From: Pavona decussata | Taxonomy: Eukaryota | NCBI GenBank assembly: GCA_977016875.1 | Contig: CDRNST010000109.1 | Span: 806,001-870,000 of the forward strand | Reading direction: 5' to 3' | DNA length: 64,000 nt | Part shown: piece after piece, positions 25,086 to 28,961 of the stretch | Layout of the letters: each line of letters begins with the position of its first letter | Position numbering within the stretch: the first letter of the stretch is position 1 | Position numbers and translations under genes: made by a program | Notes under the pieces: model-generated | Seen by the model: only the letters and a program-made list of their open reading frames with translations | Databases searched by the model: none | Told to the model about the DNA's origin: nothing

Positions 25086-28000
25086 TTATATCCTAGATTC
25101 CGCACTGTTCAGATTGTCCAAAACTTCCCTTAAACGCTCCGTTTCTACGCAGAGATATTTTTCGGCGGCATCGAATATATTCGAGTCGCCATGAACATCA
25201 GTCCATTTGTCTTTCGCAGCTTCTTTTGCAGACTTGTTTAGTTGATATCTGAAATGAGGTTTCTCGTCAATTATAATCTCTTCTATGAGTTGTGCCACTC
25301 GCTTTAGGTCAAGTTTTTTCACCGATCCCTGTCTTCGCATCTTCCCCGAGCAAGAATCTTGGTATCTTTTCGTGTCGTCGTCCGCGTTCTCCATTTTTGA
25401 GCAGATCGAAACTTGAATAGTCTGGGCTGTCTTTTCTTCTCCTTTGATCATACTTGTTTCAATGACGGAGCAGCTAAACGATGCAAAAATGTAACATAGT
25501 CAAACTTCTCAATGTTAGTGAACGAACACTACGCGCGCCAGGCATCATTATCATACCTCGTATTTAACCTGCGATCAGGCGATCTTTTTTTTTTGCAAGT
25601 TAAACGAAATAGAGCCGGGTCGCAGGTTAGCTTCTTGAATAAATACTTACAATATCTGTTTCATTTTGCATACAGCGGCAAAATGAAATTAAAGCGCATG
25701 CTCTCACGAACGGATGTTGTTCTTTTTGTTCCTTGTAATCGGATACCCAATCTCGTAGCCAGAGTCCTCAGGCTCTTTTGTCAGCGGTTGGTCACAGGAG
25801 AGACTCTGGGGAACTGGAATTTTATTACCGCAGGATTTTTGCGGTAAAACAATGGAAGCCGTTACGGGGCAGCCAATCAAAGAACCTGAGGACTTTGGGT
25901 AGGAAATTGTCGGATACCACGTTCAACTACCGGAACACCAGCCATATTTGCTCTAAGAACAATCATGGTTCACTAGCAGGCGAATTTCCCCAAATTTACC
26001 CCTCACAAAACACAATTTTTTAACCGAGAAATCTACCCCTAGAGGACACGGGAGTGAGAATTGCTCCGAAGAAAAATAACTTACACTACGAGCGCTCGAC
26101 TTCAGGCAGAAAGTTCACTATTGTTGCAAATATATTTTCTTTCTTAAAAAAGACGTGGTATTATTGTCCTTTTGGGAATTTCCTTGAAATTAACAACCTA
26201 ACTAAAACAAAAAACAGATCATTTTGCAACCTAGTTGTTTCTTTGAAAATAGTGCTCGTAGCTTAAGCATGCGCACTGATTTTGCCGCTGTGTCCATTCA
26301 GTGTGCTTTCCGTTACGTATGCGTAATTGGTCCCAAGACGCACTTCCGTAAAATTTAAGTTTCCATGTAAACAGCTTTAACTCAATAACTAAAGAACAGG
26401 CGCTATCGCTACGCAGCACAGTTCCAAAACGTCTCTTATGTACTGAATTAAACAGCTACTATTCAAAAAAACTGGTTCGATTCCCCATCCGAGCTGTTCC
26501 CTATCGCAAGATAACCATTAAAAAGAACATTTTGTTTCCTTACAATTCTATTTAACGATAAGAGACAAACTGGTGTTGAGTCAGTATCAAATTTCTGACA
26601 ATTTGTGAAAACGGAGGCTAGTTAAGGAAGGCCAAGTAGTCTACGGTTGGTCATCGTTTGGTCGATGAGTTCCTGGCTTGTTCATGCTCCGTTGCATTTT
26701 CGAAGACCCAGTTACAGATAGTCGGGCCAGTGAAAAGATTTCACGGGCGAAATCGAGACCAGTGAAGCCCCGTTCTTCCCGTCCGTGTTGTAAACTTGGC
26801 AAGTCCCGATCTCGCTCGTGAACTCTTCGCTCCGTCTCGACTAAAACCCCCTGGGTCTTCAAAGGTGGATCCGGTGGAATGAAAACAATAGACCGTTCTC
26901 TAAAATGGCAGCCAAAAATTCAACTAAGTTAAAATTTAATCGTATACCAACACTAGAAAGAACACTTTTCCTTTAGTAAGATATTTCATGCAAAGTTTCA
27001 GCATATCAAGTGTAATATCAGCTGAGAAAATGTAAGTTGAAAAATAAAAAAAGTACAGACGTTTGTATGACTTGGGGTATGACGTATACTACCAGTCATA
27101 CAAACGTCTGTAAATTTGTCAAATTTCATCTTACATTTTCTAAGCTAATATAACACCTAATATGCTAAAACTTTGCAAGGTTACTAAATAAAAGTAAAGG
27201 TGCTCTTTTCAGTGCTGGTATCAGTTTTTCATTCAGTTCAATTTTAACTCATTGAAATCTGTTGCCGCCATTTTGGAGAAGGGTCTATTAAAGTTGAACC
27301 TTTTACTATGACAAAAATAAACGATCATCTAAGCTTACTGGATATTAAACGCCAGACACTCCGGTGCAATGCTCTCCATAAATCCCTCGACAGCAAATCT
27401 TGAGGCGCAGTAGATACCGTGGAAAGGGATGCCTTGTATTCCAGCCTGATTACTGACAACTATAAGCCGGCCGTCTCGTTGTTTCTTCATCAAAGGAAGA
27501 ACAGCCTTGATTAGATTTATCACCGAAAAAGTGTTCACATCAAATATAGTCTTTGCTTGGTCGATGGTGTGAGTTTCTAACTGGCCACTGAGCAGAACGT
27601 TTGATGTTATAACTGAAAAGAAAGAGATATGATGTTTACTTGCTGTAAGATCCCAAACATAAACTTTCTTGACCTTTGTTCAAGAGCAGACAGTTTAATT
27701 GGTTTATAAGGGAATTTTTGCAATTTGCACTGAATTATGCAGACAAGGAAAGGTCACAGTTGAACGAGAGAAATAAATTGAAGAAGCTCTAGCGAGCTCC
27801 GAAAGAAAGAAACATTTTAAAACACAGAACTGGCCGGCCAGCAATTCTGTTTCGTAAGTCGCGAAAGGAGAACTTACGCGCGCGAATGCCACACGCGGAG
27901 CGCGGAGGCAAAGAACAGCGAAAAGTTTGTTTGCGGAAGGCGAATTTCATCGCGTGATTCATCCTCCGTGACCAGGCTTATAAGATTAGAGCATGTAAAT

Positions 28001-28961
28001 ATTTCAGAAATGAAATCCATATTTATTTCGCCTGATTGTTTGTGAAAGAAAGGTGTAGTGGAATTTTATATTACAAGATTTAAGAGTCGGCTGGCACGTT
28101 GCGTGTACATCCATCCGTCGAGCAGACATGTGAAACATGGTATACAAACAATCGGTACATCGGCAGACCGGAAACTCAAGAATGCAATGTCTTTCAGGTT
28201 GAAGAGTGCCCAAAATATTTTGCCTGTCTTCTATTATTTCCCCAAATTTGCTGGTGAGATCATAATAGATGGAGATAGAAAACAAATAATTACAATCCTG
28301 GCGTGTTTTTGTAGTTGAACAAAGATGATATAACAGGCCATCGAAGAAACAGATGAATGTGTTCCCCTTCGGGATGACAAACTGACACATGCGTTTCCAA
28401 TCGAACTGTCAGAAAAGATATGAGAGTAATCCCTCAGTTCGTCTACAAGCAAAGGGAAAAATACCTCAGAAACATTTTAGACTTTACAATTTGCCTCTAC
28501 ATGCAAATTATTATTGAAATTAATATTGATTGGTGAGACATTTGAGTTTTCAAAGCCGCACGTTGCTTCGCGGCGGCACGCGGATTAAATACTCTGGTAT
28601 GATAGGACTCACCCACAGCATCGATAAAGCCGTCGTTGTCCATGATCTCTCGCAGAACTCTACGAACCGATTCGTCTGATTCCATGTCCATTTGCAGAAC
28701 AAACAGCGTCTTGTTCAGTACATTCAAAATCCTCGAGTCAGCTAAGTATTCGCTACTTGAAAGAGAAGGCATTGTAACCAGTACTTTAAACTTAGAGAGC
28801 GTCTCTTCGGCCAGGGGAAGGGCAAACGCTAGGTTCATTTTGTGTGAAGAGCCCGTGAATAGAATCACTTTGGGACCGCTCGCTTCTTCTTCTTTCTGGC
28901 TGTGTACACTCTTACGAGTAGAGCTTCGTTTTCTTTTAAACCGACTTTTCGCAGCGCCCAT
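25086..28961 (-). CDS. Divergent RDH8/17-beta-HSD1-like short-chain dehydrogenase paralogue, probable pseudoenzyme, 336 aa
   Basis: Exons 28961-28613, 27612-27339 and 25473-25086 (1011 nt, open). Aligns throughout with the neighbouring SDR (LIKAVLP, GIPFHGIYCASRFAVEG, KPHFRYQ) and has the same intron phases and a 274-nt exon 2. Confidence 0.9.
26698..26864. mobile_element. Small palindromic MITE
   Basis: GAAGACCCAG / CTGGGTCTTC ends plus inner IR TTCACGGGCGAAATCG / CGATCTCGCTCGTGAA. Confidence 0.6.
26887..27289. mobile_element. Foldback MITE, imperfectly palindromic over ~400 bp
   Basis: AATAGACCGTTCTCTAAAATGGC / GCCATTTTGGAGAAGGGTCTATT; centre CAGACGTTTGTATGACT / AGTCATACAAACGTCTG. Confidence 0.85.

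Follow-up and report, generated by a model that had tools for sequence, protein, structure and literature searches.

A conserved anthozoan protein of the HSD17B1/RDH8 family with altered cofactor signatures and a candidate N-myristoylation signal

What does an SDR gene encode when its cofactor-binding motifs have been replaced and its reading frame has stayed open? The question is raised by gene B, which lies in a 64,000-nucleotide window of the Pavona decussata genome (the whole stretch of DNA analyzed; all positions refer to it). Gene B is a genuine three-exon gene of the SDR28C (HSD17B1/RDH8-type) family. It comprises 336 codons, and its introns are all GT-AG, in phases 1 and 2. A preliminary description, made from the sequence without database searches, had proposed this open three-exon gene, and its coordinates, its phases and the exon-3 acceptor at 25473 are all verified here. 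The same description noted a canonical paralogue in tandem with gene B, termed gene A below. The features of both genes are collected in Table 1.

Table 1. Features of genes A and B in the window
Feature	Position	Strand	Remarks
Gene B 5′ untranslated region	28962..29097	(-)	collinear with the genome; without an upstream coding exon
Gene B exon 1	28613..28961	(-)	349 nt, ends in phase 1; donor G|GTGAGT; N-terminal tail and β1–β3 of the Rossmann fold
Gene B exon 2	27339..27612	(-)	274 nt, phase 1 in, phase 2 out; β4 to α-F, the most conserved part
Gene B exon 3	25086..25473	(-)	388 nt including the stop; acceptor tttag|C; former PG motif, lid region, KPHFRYQ, clade-specific C-terminal helix
MGAAKS, candidate N-myristoylation signal	28944..28961	(-)	first in-frame ATG, context aagATGG
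Basic Ser/Thr-rich patch KSRFKRKRSSTRKS	28908..28949	(-)	strong in scleractinians, weaker in sea anemones
TGSSHKMN replacing TGxxxGxG	28833..28856	(-)	HSD17B1 G13 to K and G15 to N; second and third Gly lost
ITSN replacing NNAG	27599..27610	(-)	HSD17B1 N90/A91/G92 to T/S/N
SNQAG, Asn at the catalytic Ser position	27440..27454	(-)	HSD17B1 S142 to N
YCASR, Tyr retained, Lys to Arg	27398..27412	(-)	HSD17B1 K159 to R
IETSM replacing IEPGP (PG motif gone)	25449..25463	(-)	sequence and clade comparison
RRQGSVKK, conserved basic-Ser motif in the lid region	25314..25337	(-)	candidate kinase site
Gene A exon 1	37595..37859	(-)	canonical TGCSSGIG and TLRNL
Gene A exon 2	34457..34730	(-)	274 nt; NNAG, SSVGG, YCASK
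Gene A exon 3	30761..31088	(-)	IEPGP, KPHLRYQ, stop

The exon borders of gene B are echoed by transcripts from other corals, whose matches stop at 28613/28615, cover 27613–27339 and begin again at 25472. Several sequencing runs and JGI samples yield contigs that lack the introns and match the window in three blocks, with block ends at the predicted borders; one of these contigs ends in AATAAA. We treat these contigs as transcripts, their RNA origin being deduced from the missing introns; all of them come from related species, and none was found from the species of the window. At the 5′ end, contig L034 aligns unbroken from 29097 through the ATG to 28613. A different exon-3 acceptor, at 25452, was rejected: it would give a protein of 329 residues and breaks the alignment with gene A. 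The acceptor at 25473 is correct because it restores the CS[VIL]IE alignment and agrees with the transcripts. Exon 3 is 63–89% identical to its orthologues. Database searches for gene B used single exons and natural full-length orthologues as queries, not the joined 336-residue model.

Gene B lies downstream of gene A, with 1.8 kb between the stop of A and the ATG of B. The exons of gene A confirm that it is canonical, that the intron phases of the two genes are identical and that both have a middle exon of 274 nt. Identity between the two genes is 33, 56 and 34% for exons 1, 2 and 3, respectively.

The motifs quoted in the preliminary description (TGSSHKMN, ITSN, SNQAG and YCASR) are each found at the coordinates in Table 1, where they are numbered by alignment to human HSD17B1. 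Two changes were missing from its list: the residue equivalent to R37 of HSD17B1 is Pro in gene B, and the PG motif is lost. Scored against the Pfam adh_short profile (PF00106), exon 1 of gene B reaches 13 bits versus 41 bits for exon 1 of gene A; exon 2 of gene B reaches 64 bits. Hexacoral orthologues of B share the altered state, with TGxSH[KRQ]xN, [ILV]TSN, Asn at the catalytic Ser position and ETS in place of the PG motif. A more distant type of B (L042, P0006 and P0007) has IASD for NNAG and Thr at the catalytic Ser position. The replacement of YCASK by YCASR is present in the window but is lineage-specific, being limited to the window’s lineage and one relative (P0108/P0079); Lys is kept in the remaining full-length orthologues, in the Nematostella genomic copy and in the distant type.

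Taken from these motifs, B is very probably unable to use NADP(H). The term ‘catalytically dead’, used earlier for this protein, calls for more caution. The catalytic tetrad Asn-Ser-Tyr-Lys is incomplete, with Ser replaced and Asn and Tyr kept, and conservation throughout the B clade extends to Tyr184, Asn143 and Lys188 (Arg in the window). Together with a retained Asp equivalent to D65 of HSD17B1, the Tyr, the Asn and, in most species, the Lys would be unexpected in a pure scaffold and count against the non-catalytic reading favored below.

We favor, with moderate confidence, the reading that B is a conserved anthozoan SDR28C protein that keeps the SDR fold and its dimer surface, is anchored and works without redox turnover. 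Because its cofactor-binding signatures are all lost and a lipid-anchor signal has been gained, B is probably a membrane-located, non-catalytic binding or regulatory protein. Met1 would be removed and Gly2 myristoylated, and the lipid together with the basic tail would bring the protein to a membrane, on its cytosolic side. The folded domain may then dimerize in the manner of HSD17B1, as a homodimer or paired with an active member of the family, and could engage a partner or a hydrophobic ligand by way of its highly conserved lid and the Tyr/Asn/Lys pocket that it retains. A more specific proposal is tentative and, on balance, doubtful: that hexacorals possess an ancient, cofactor-blind, lipid-anchored protein of the HSD17B1/RDH8 fold that acts at membranes as a sensor binding retinoids or steroids, or as an anchoring or regulatory subunit of an expanded RDH8-like family.

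The best sequence match to B among solved structures is human HSD17B1 (E 7e-27). For structure prediction a natural orthologue, P0108, was folded, and the homodimer was likewise modeled with an orthologue. The AlphaFold2 model of P0108 (pLDDT 80, pTM 0.80) has the SDR order of strands and helices, with residues 1–27 disordered. Foldseek returns HSD17B1 as its best match (TM 0.80 by target), with a probability of 1.00 to both HSD17B1 and FabG. The homodimer prediction scores 0.84 against 0.00 for the best control; runs agree on at least 88% of contacts, and the partner pLDDT is at least 78. Of 30 solved homodimers, 21 attain the mark applied to this prediction, and none of 23 solved monomers does; the pass obtained for B may reflect memorization because the HSD17B1 dimer has already been solved. 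The predicted interface is formed by α-E, α-F and the C-terminal helices, in line with the preliminary description, which had singled out the conserved helices as a means of oligomerization.

That description went further and proposed that B could tether or regulate its soluble paralogue at membranes. In the form considered here, B would serve A, or other SDR28C paralogues, as an obligate, non-catalytic partner, and an α-E/α-F heterodimer would hold the soluble enzyme at membranes. We regard this as unlikely, though it is the best of the alternatives. The canonical gene precedes the degenerate one on the same strand in the window, in Porites and in Nematostella, and within exon 2 the predicted interface positions are more alike between A and B than the rest (66% versus 43% identity, and 50% versus 30% in Nematostella). 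This likeness is expected in any case, because conservation of the α-F helix extends to the entire family. In Desmophyllum and in the distant type, the 10 kb upstream of B contain no A-type exon; the two Acropora records consulted for gene order are transcript contigs. About 20 further paralogues of the family are present in the genome, and the lid and C-terminus of B are more conserved than a mere anchor requires.

Inactive SDR subunits that are required for assembly are documented. In known heteromeric SDRs (petunia benzaldehyde synthase β, BbsCD of Aromatoleum and HSD17B8–CBR4), the inactive subunits are needed for assembly and for substrate binding (PMC13418739 and references therein). B resembles them in being an SDR paralogue without the canonical catalytic residues that is kept by selection. 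However, they are members of other SDR families and assemble with a proven partner into soluble tetramers, whereas B has no cofactor motif at all, carries a lipid-anchor signal and is read from sequence with a hypothetical partner. The petunia crystal was obtained with NADP+, and the catalytic Lys is the only residue named as missing from its β subunit (PMC13418739). The preliminary description knew of no such enzyme/pseudoenzyme pair in this family. We found no description in the literature of an inactive subunit in the HSD17B1/RDH8 family, or of an SDR one with such a lipid anchor. The claim therefore stands for that family and for the lipid anchor and is limited to them, since enzyme/pseudoenzyme pairs have been described in other SDR families (PMC13418739).

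A further comparison is with RDH10 and DHRS3, two membrane-associated retinoid SDRs that form a hetero-oligomer and control one another; both keep their cofactor motifs and remain active, and the two do not form a tandem pair of 28C paralogues. Vertebrate RDH8 owes its membrane attachment to C-terminal acylation and not to a signal at the N-terminus. B shares KPH-x-RYQ and the α-F helix (YCAS-x-FA-x-EG) with human HSD17B1 and vertebrate RDH8. It differs from them in the replacement of TGxxxGxG, NNAG, the PG motif, the 2′-phosphate Arg and the catalytic Ser, and in the addition of an N-terminal tail of about 30 residues bearing MGxxKS and of a conserved C-terminal helix. Cnidarian members of the HSD17B1/RDH8 family have been reported earlier (PMC3184775).

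A second alternative departs from our favored reading at the point of catalysis: B may still be an enzyme, binding a nicotinamide cofactor in a non-classical way or carrying out cofactor-independent chemistry like that of the halohydrin dehalogenases. The clade-wide conservation of the pocket residues described above speaks for this idea, as does the presence of halohydrin dehalogenases, which have the SDR fold and work without NAD(P), among the fold matches. The Tyr-x3-Arg of the B protein in the window is a further likeness to these enzymes. Their defining Ser-Tyr-Arg triad is nevertheless broken in B, where Asn occupies the Ser position across the hexacoral clade and Arg is found in two lineages only, so that a halohydrin-dehalogenase reading of Tyr-x3-Arg was rejected. 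We also considered the segment G-S-S-H-K-M-N-L-A, which we take to resemble the G-x5-S-x-A motif of FabI-type enoyl reductases. This candidate was rejected as well: the PDB matches to the N-terminal 98 residues (28–125) at E up to 1 include no enoyl reductase, whether FabI or InhA (the best match is HSD17B1, E 0.06), and Tyr and Lys/Arg are spaced as in the classical Y-x3-K and not as in Y-x6-K. The alteration affects four separate cofactor-contact motifs together and is fixed. We consider continued enzymatic activity unlikely, and somewhat less probable than a tethering role.

The N-terminal tail is the element on which membrane location would depend. M1, G2, S6 and R7 are invariant in seven full-length B orthologues, and the remainder of the tail varies. 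The pattern MG-x-x-[KR]-S is kept across the orthologues, including those of Nematostella, Porites, Desmophyllum and the distant type, and all eight N-termini read agree with the PROSITE pattern for myristoylation, G-{EDRKHPFYW}-x(2)-[STAGCN]-{P} (by eye). The MG start in a strong context, described earlier for the window, is borne out: its −3 base is A and its +4 base is G, and it is the first in-frame ATG in the window and in all four of the 5′ regions from other species. Orthologues had been expected to retain G2 and S6, the polybasic patch and the lost motifs. G2, S6 and the motif state are indeed retained; the patch is weak in the two sea anemones, with three to four basic residues.

Other translation starts were considered. 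A splice acceptor (ctaaag|ATGG) that would bring in a different first exon was rejected; the transcript 5′ untranslated regions of two other species are collinear with the genome and run straight through this site. An apparent upstream start in P0081 (‘MNVNV...-MGAVKS’) was likewise rejected: the extension begins at a non-ATG codon picked by a bacterial gene caller, and the P0081 transcript has no in-frame ATG upstream of MG. The P0002 protein reads ‘MWK-MGAAKS’, which resembles an upstream start. Canonical relatives with MGxxxS tails (P0015, P0023, P0041, P0027 and P0042) fall outside the B clade in an exon-1 tree that is itself poorly resolved.

In its MG-x-x-x-S start, followed by a Lys/Arg cluster with Ser/Thr in a disordered tail, B resembles proteins with a Src/MARCKS-type myristoyl-electrostatic switch. 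It differs from them in that the tail sits on an SDR fold, the acylation and any phosphorylation are putative and the basic cluster is weak in sea anemones. The tail could instead be a sorting signal, for the nucleus or for some other compartment in which the protein would then work. FKRKRSS conforms to a classical monopartite nuclear signal, and the tail is disordered in the AlphaFold2 model. However, KRKR is not kept in Acropora (FKKQGSS), Exaiptasia and Nematostella, and it is G2 and S6 that are invariant, in N-termini that all fit the myristoylation pattern. We consider a sorting signal highly improbable and retain the lipid-anchor reading of the tail.

B orthologues are found in Acropora (four species), Porites, Desmophyllum, Exaiptasia, Nematostella and several other anthozoans. 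Against these, pN is 0.05–0.16 and pS 0.55–0.88, giving a dN/dS of approximately 0.03–0.10 with saturated synonymous sites. Relative to a close relative, exon 1 has eight synonymous and six replacement changes, and the intron is 93% identical. B is conserved at least as well as A: identity to Porites in exon 3 is 83% for B and 70% for A, and identity to Nematostella over the three exons is 62/74/63% for B and 58/61/43% for A. Selection was a check proposed at the outset, and the low ratio and the intact orthologues point to a constrained gene, not a pseudogene. That B is a non-functional duplicate, open by chance, has nothing beyond the degenerate motifs in its favor and is refuted by spliced transcripts, intact orthologues in at least nine named species and this degree of constraint at saturated synonymous sites.

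The B clade is monophyletic (100/100), with a long stem (approximately 0.9 changes per site) and short inner branches. It groups within the SDR28C family, and the tree leaves its exact sister open; membership by descent is indicated by HSD17B1 as the top solved relative, by the retained KPHFRYQ and α-F helix and by the shared intron phases. Comparison of the motifs across the clade supports one loss of the signatures for cofactor binding and for the catalytic Ser, along the stem of the scleractinian/sea-anemone clade, after which they stayed lost. A burst of change along the stem was followed, from before the split between stony corals and sea anemones, by conservation that exceeds that of the neighboring enzyme. 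The clade offers a clean natural example of a probable conversion of an enzyme into a pseudoenzyme, with a dated order of events.

RDH8 gene counts have already been read as a measure of coral light sensing (PMC13440232). B should not be counted as an RDH8 enzyme, because its use of NADP(H) is very probably impossible. Nematostella and Exaiptasia are laboratory models that carry B, so location, partners and ligand binding are directly testable, and a G2A mutant provides a simple experimental handle. Such tests bear on the handling of retinoids and steroids by cnidarians, which is still an open question. If the lipid-anchored, cofactor-blind reading is true, animals without vertebrate-type steroid receptors would have, in B, a pseudoenzyme-based point of control over how retinoids or steroids are handled.

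Profile searches for further relatives scored the 8000 candidates with the most shared words; beyond the same orthologues they yielded two bacterial SDRs, a result that does not imply absence from octocorals or medusozoans. The database names returned for the B orthologues are all ‘retinol dehydrogenase 8(-like)’ or ‘predicted protein’.

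Gene B, the three-exon SDR28C (HSD17B1/RDH8-type) gene under study, and its canonical tandem paralogue, gene A, lie on the same strand, with A placed 1.8 kb upstream of the ATG of B. The motifs TGCSSGIG, TLRNL, NNAG, SSVGG, YCASK and IEPGP of A are replaced in B by TGSSHKMN, TMPSL, ITSN, SNQAG, YCASR and IETSM. A HMMER alignment of a B orthologue with human HSD17B1 places the changes at G13 (to K), G15 (to N), R37 (to P), N90/A91/G92 (to T/S/N), S142 (to N) and K159 (to R), with N114, Y155 and D65 retained. The gene and motif changes reported in the preliminary description proved correct in all details checked (exon models, motif positions and HSD17B1 alignment); that arginine and the PG motif (IEPGP to IETSM) are further losses. 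The Pfam adh_short profile scores 41 bits on exon 1 of A and 13 bits on that of B, and 64 bits on exon 2 of B. Identity between A and B is 33% in exon 1, 56% in exon 2 and 34% in exon 3. Searches and folds used single window exons and natural full-length orthologues.

Features of the Pavona decussata stretch, in window coordinates
Feature	Position	Strand	Remarks
Gene B, three exons	28961-28613, 27612-27339, 25473-25086	minus	GT-AG introns, phases 1 and 2; 336 codons
Gene A, three exons	37859-37595, 34730-34457, 31088-30761	minus	intron phases as in B; middle exon 274 nt, as in B
RRQGSVKK motif of B	25314-25337		basic-Ser motif in former lid
Match to 3'UTR of orthologous transcript L034	24042-24097		57 nt, 79% identity, about 1 kb past B stop
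ACATACG-type arrays	32873-33005, 33394-33542		gene A intron 2; 10-11-nt repeats, opposite orientation, about 400 bp apart
Integrase_H2C2 open frame	47-1411	plus	454 aa; integrase zinc-binding domain, E 7e-11

Exon 1 of B alone, searched against 1.8 billion representative proteins, gives ten matches below 1e-10, six of which carry MG-x-x-K-S at the start or after extra upstream residues supplied by the gene caller; the remaining four begin further in. Full-length relatives occur in Acropora cervicornis, A. palmata, A. muricata and A. digitifera (336 residues), Porites harrisoni (339) and Exaiptasia diaphana (325). Others were recovered from Desmophyllum pertusum, Nematostella vectensis (a partial model, the remainder read from genomic DNA) and several further lineages. 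Several orthologues are encoded without introns on contigs of 1.1–2.3 kb from multiple sequencing runs and JGI samples, one of them ending with AATAAA. Against the window these contigs align in three blocks whose ends (28613/28615, 27613–27339/41 and 25472) are the predicted exon borders; in the most distant contig the third block is bounded at 25462 instead of 25472. We take them to be transcripts; none was found from the window's own species. The orthologous 3'UTR match (Table) suggests that the 3'UTR of B in the window may be long or contain an insertion.

The sequence of B is under tight constraint. Replacement differences, counted for the window against three transcripts and in comparisons among transcripts, are 0.05–0.16 per site and synonymous differences 0.55–0.88, the latter mostly saturated; where dS is computable, dN/dS is 0.03–0.10. 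The preliminary description had looked for support to intact cnidarian orthologues and to a dN/dS well below 1; both are seen. A close relative's genomic contig matches the window with 93% identity across the intron and the upstream region and with 95% in exon 1, where there are eight synonymous and six replacement differences, four of them in the variable linker. B is conserved at least as well as its canonical neighbour: identity between Porites and the window in exon 3 is 83% for B and 70% for A, and between Nematostella and the window the three exons of B are 62/74/63% identical, those of A 58/61/43%. Support for the B clade is 100/100 in both the exon 1 and the exon 2 tree. Its stem is long (about 0.9 changes per site) and its inner branches short, meaning that rapid change on the stem gave way to strong constraint. 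A and B group in the exon 2 tree with weak support only, and neither tree settles the canonical sister of B.

All hexacoral B orthologues share TGxSH[KRQ]xN (SG in protein P0005), P65, [ILV]TSN, [ST]NQAG and ETS, and a distant type (L042, P0006, P0007) carries TGSSEK, IASD, NTQAG, YSATK and LETS. The claimed losses of the Gly motif, NNAG and catalytic Ser are therefore clade-wide, but the Lys of Y-x3-K is replaced only in the window and one relative; its retention in all other B orthologues marks the change to Arg as late and lineage-specific. Within the clade, conservation is also high in what was the substrate lid (KGEEKTAQ...SKMEN.DDDTK.YQDS...RRQGSVKK) and in a C-terminal helix missing from A. 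The basic-Ser motif of the lid, a possible kinase site, is kept from corals to sea anemones, as KRQGSIKK in Exaiptasia and NRSSVKK in the distant type.

M1, G2, S6 and R7 are invariant in the seven full-length B orthologues, and the stretch of ~20 residues that follows is variable in both sequence and length. The PROSITE N-myristoylation pattern matches all eight N-termini read (GAAKSR, GAVKSR, GGVKSR, GATKSR, GSVRSR, GAARSR, GAFKSI and GALKSL). In the window and in all four 5' regions read from other species, no in-frame ATG precedes the MG codon, which has A at −3 and G at +4. Upstream of the ATG, the 5'UTRs of two other species are collinear with the window, and no alternative first coding exon is therefore seen. 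The proposed conservation of G2 and S6 thus stands; the polybasic patch is strong in scleractinians, but Exaiptasia and Nematostella have a weak one of three or four basic residues. In Desmophyllum (MU826350.1, about 9860–9945 in L032) the start MGAARSRFKRK... is out of frame with the remaining exon 1, and the deposited protein consequently begins at an internal Met; either a genuine frameshift or an error of assembly in an A-run could account for this. Five relatives (P0015, P0023, P0041, P0027, P0042) combine an intact TGC[ST][ST]G[IVL]G with MG-x-x-x-S tails (MGSGASKK, MGNGASKS, MGVAASRR, MGQRSS), so lipid-anchored yet active SDR28C members may exist; they fall outside the B clade in the exon 1 tree, itself unresolved. 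In P0074, an exon-type fragment of 126 residues with 30% identity to exon 1 of B, the Gly motif is likewise destroyed (VILMVDCTENNN), and the N-terminus is basic and rich in Ser but lacks an MG start; this protein may be a degenerate member of independent origin or a very distant one.

Orthologue P0108, which shares 86–92% identity with the window in each exon, gives an AlphaFold2 model with a pLDDT of 80 and a pTM of 0.80, with residues 1–27 disordered; human HSD17B1 structures rank first among the fold matches of this model. The predicted homodimer of residues 28–336 scores 0.84, and the highest-scoring of three controls 0.00, with at least 88% of contacts shared between runs and a partner pLDDT of at least 78. 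Among solved structures, 21 of 30 homodimers and 0 of 23 monomers attain this mark; because the HSD17B1 dimer is already solved, the pass may reflect a structure known to the predictor. The predicted interface comprises αE, αF, KPHFRYQ and the C-terminal helices.

The best-supported reading of the sequences and models is that B would be a membrane-directed, cofactor-blind protein that dimerises as HSD17B1 does and acts through binding rather than turnover. We argue that the old active-site cleft may still bind something, putatively a retinoid, steroid or protein, because the pocket Tyr, Asn and Lys are retained and the lid is strongly conserved. The tether originally proposed, with B in a heteromer with A, is possible: within exon 2 the paralogues are 66% identical at predicted interface positions versus 43% elsewhere, which is compatible with mixed dimers but also expected from general αF conservation. 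Residual or new enzymatic activity is conceivable, but the halohydrin-dehalogenase triad is incomplete and a PDB sequence search lent no support to reading the Gly motif as FabI-like.

By descent B belongs to SDR family 28C, of which cnidarian members were reported earlier (PMC3184775), but it lacks the defining enzyme motifs. The supposed lack of precedent holds for this family and for the lipid anchor only: other SDR families have well-established inactive subunits (petunia benzaldehyde synthase β, BbsCD and HSD17B8–CBR4; PMC13418739 and its references), but full-text searches covering few subscription journals found no paper on the B clade as a pseudoenzyme or on an N-myristoylated SDR28C member.

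In Porites, B is preceded at a distance of 8 kb by the last exon of an A-type gene on the same strand, and Nematostella contig L033 carries a complete A-type gene (4809–7956) followed by B (9935–13649). No A-type exon was found within 10 kb upstream of B in Desmophyllum or in the distant type. B is single-copy in the 602-Mb genome of the window's species; about 20 canonical RDH8-like paralogues occur in arrays on other contigs, including C327 and C145, and the nine with a first exon read all begin directly with M[AS]P[KQ]IVLISGCSSGIG, without a tail. First exons on C327 at 366090, 373178 and 380266 have identical scores and recur at intervals of exactly 7,088 bp, which points to a tandem segmental repeat of recent origin; in one neighbouring copy the reading frame contains a TAA. 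The ACATACG-type arrays look like a foldback or MITE-like insertion, and the Integrase_H2C2 open frame is a retroelement remnant.
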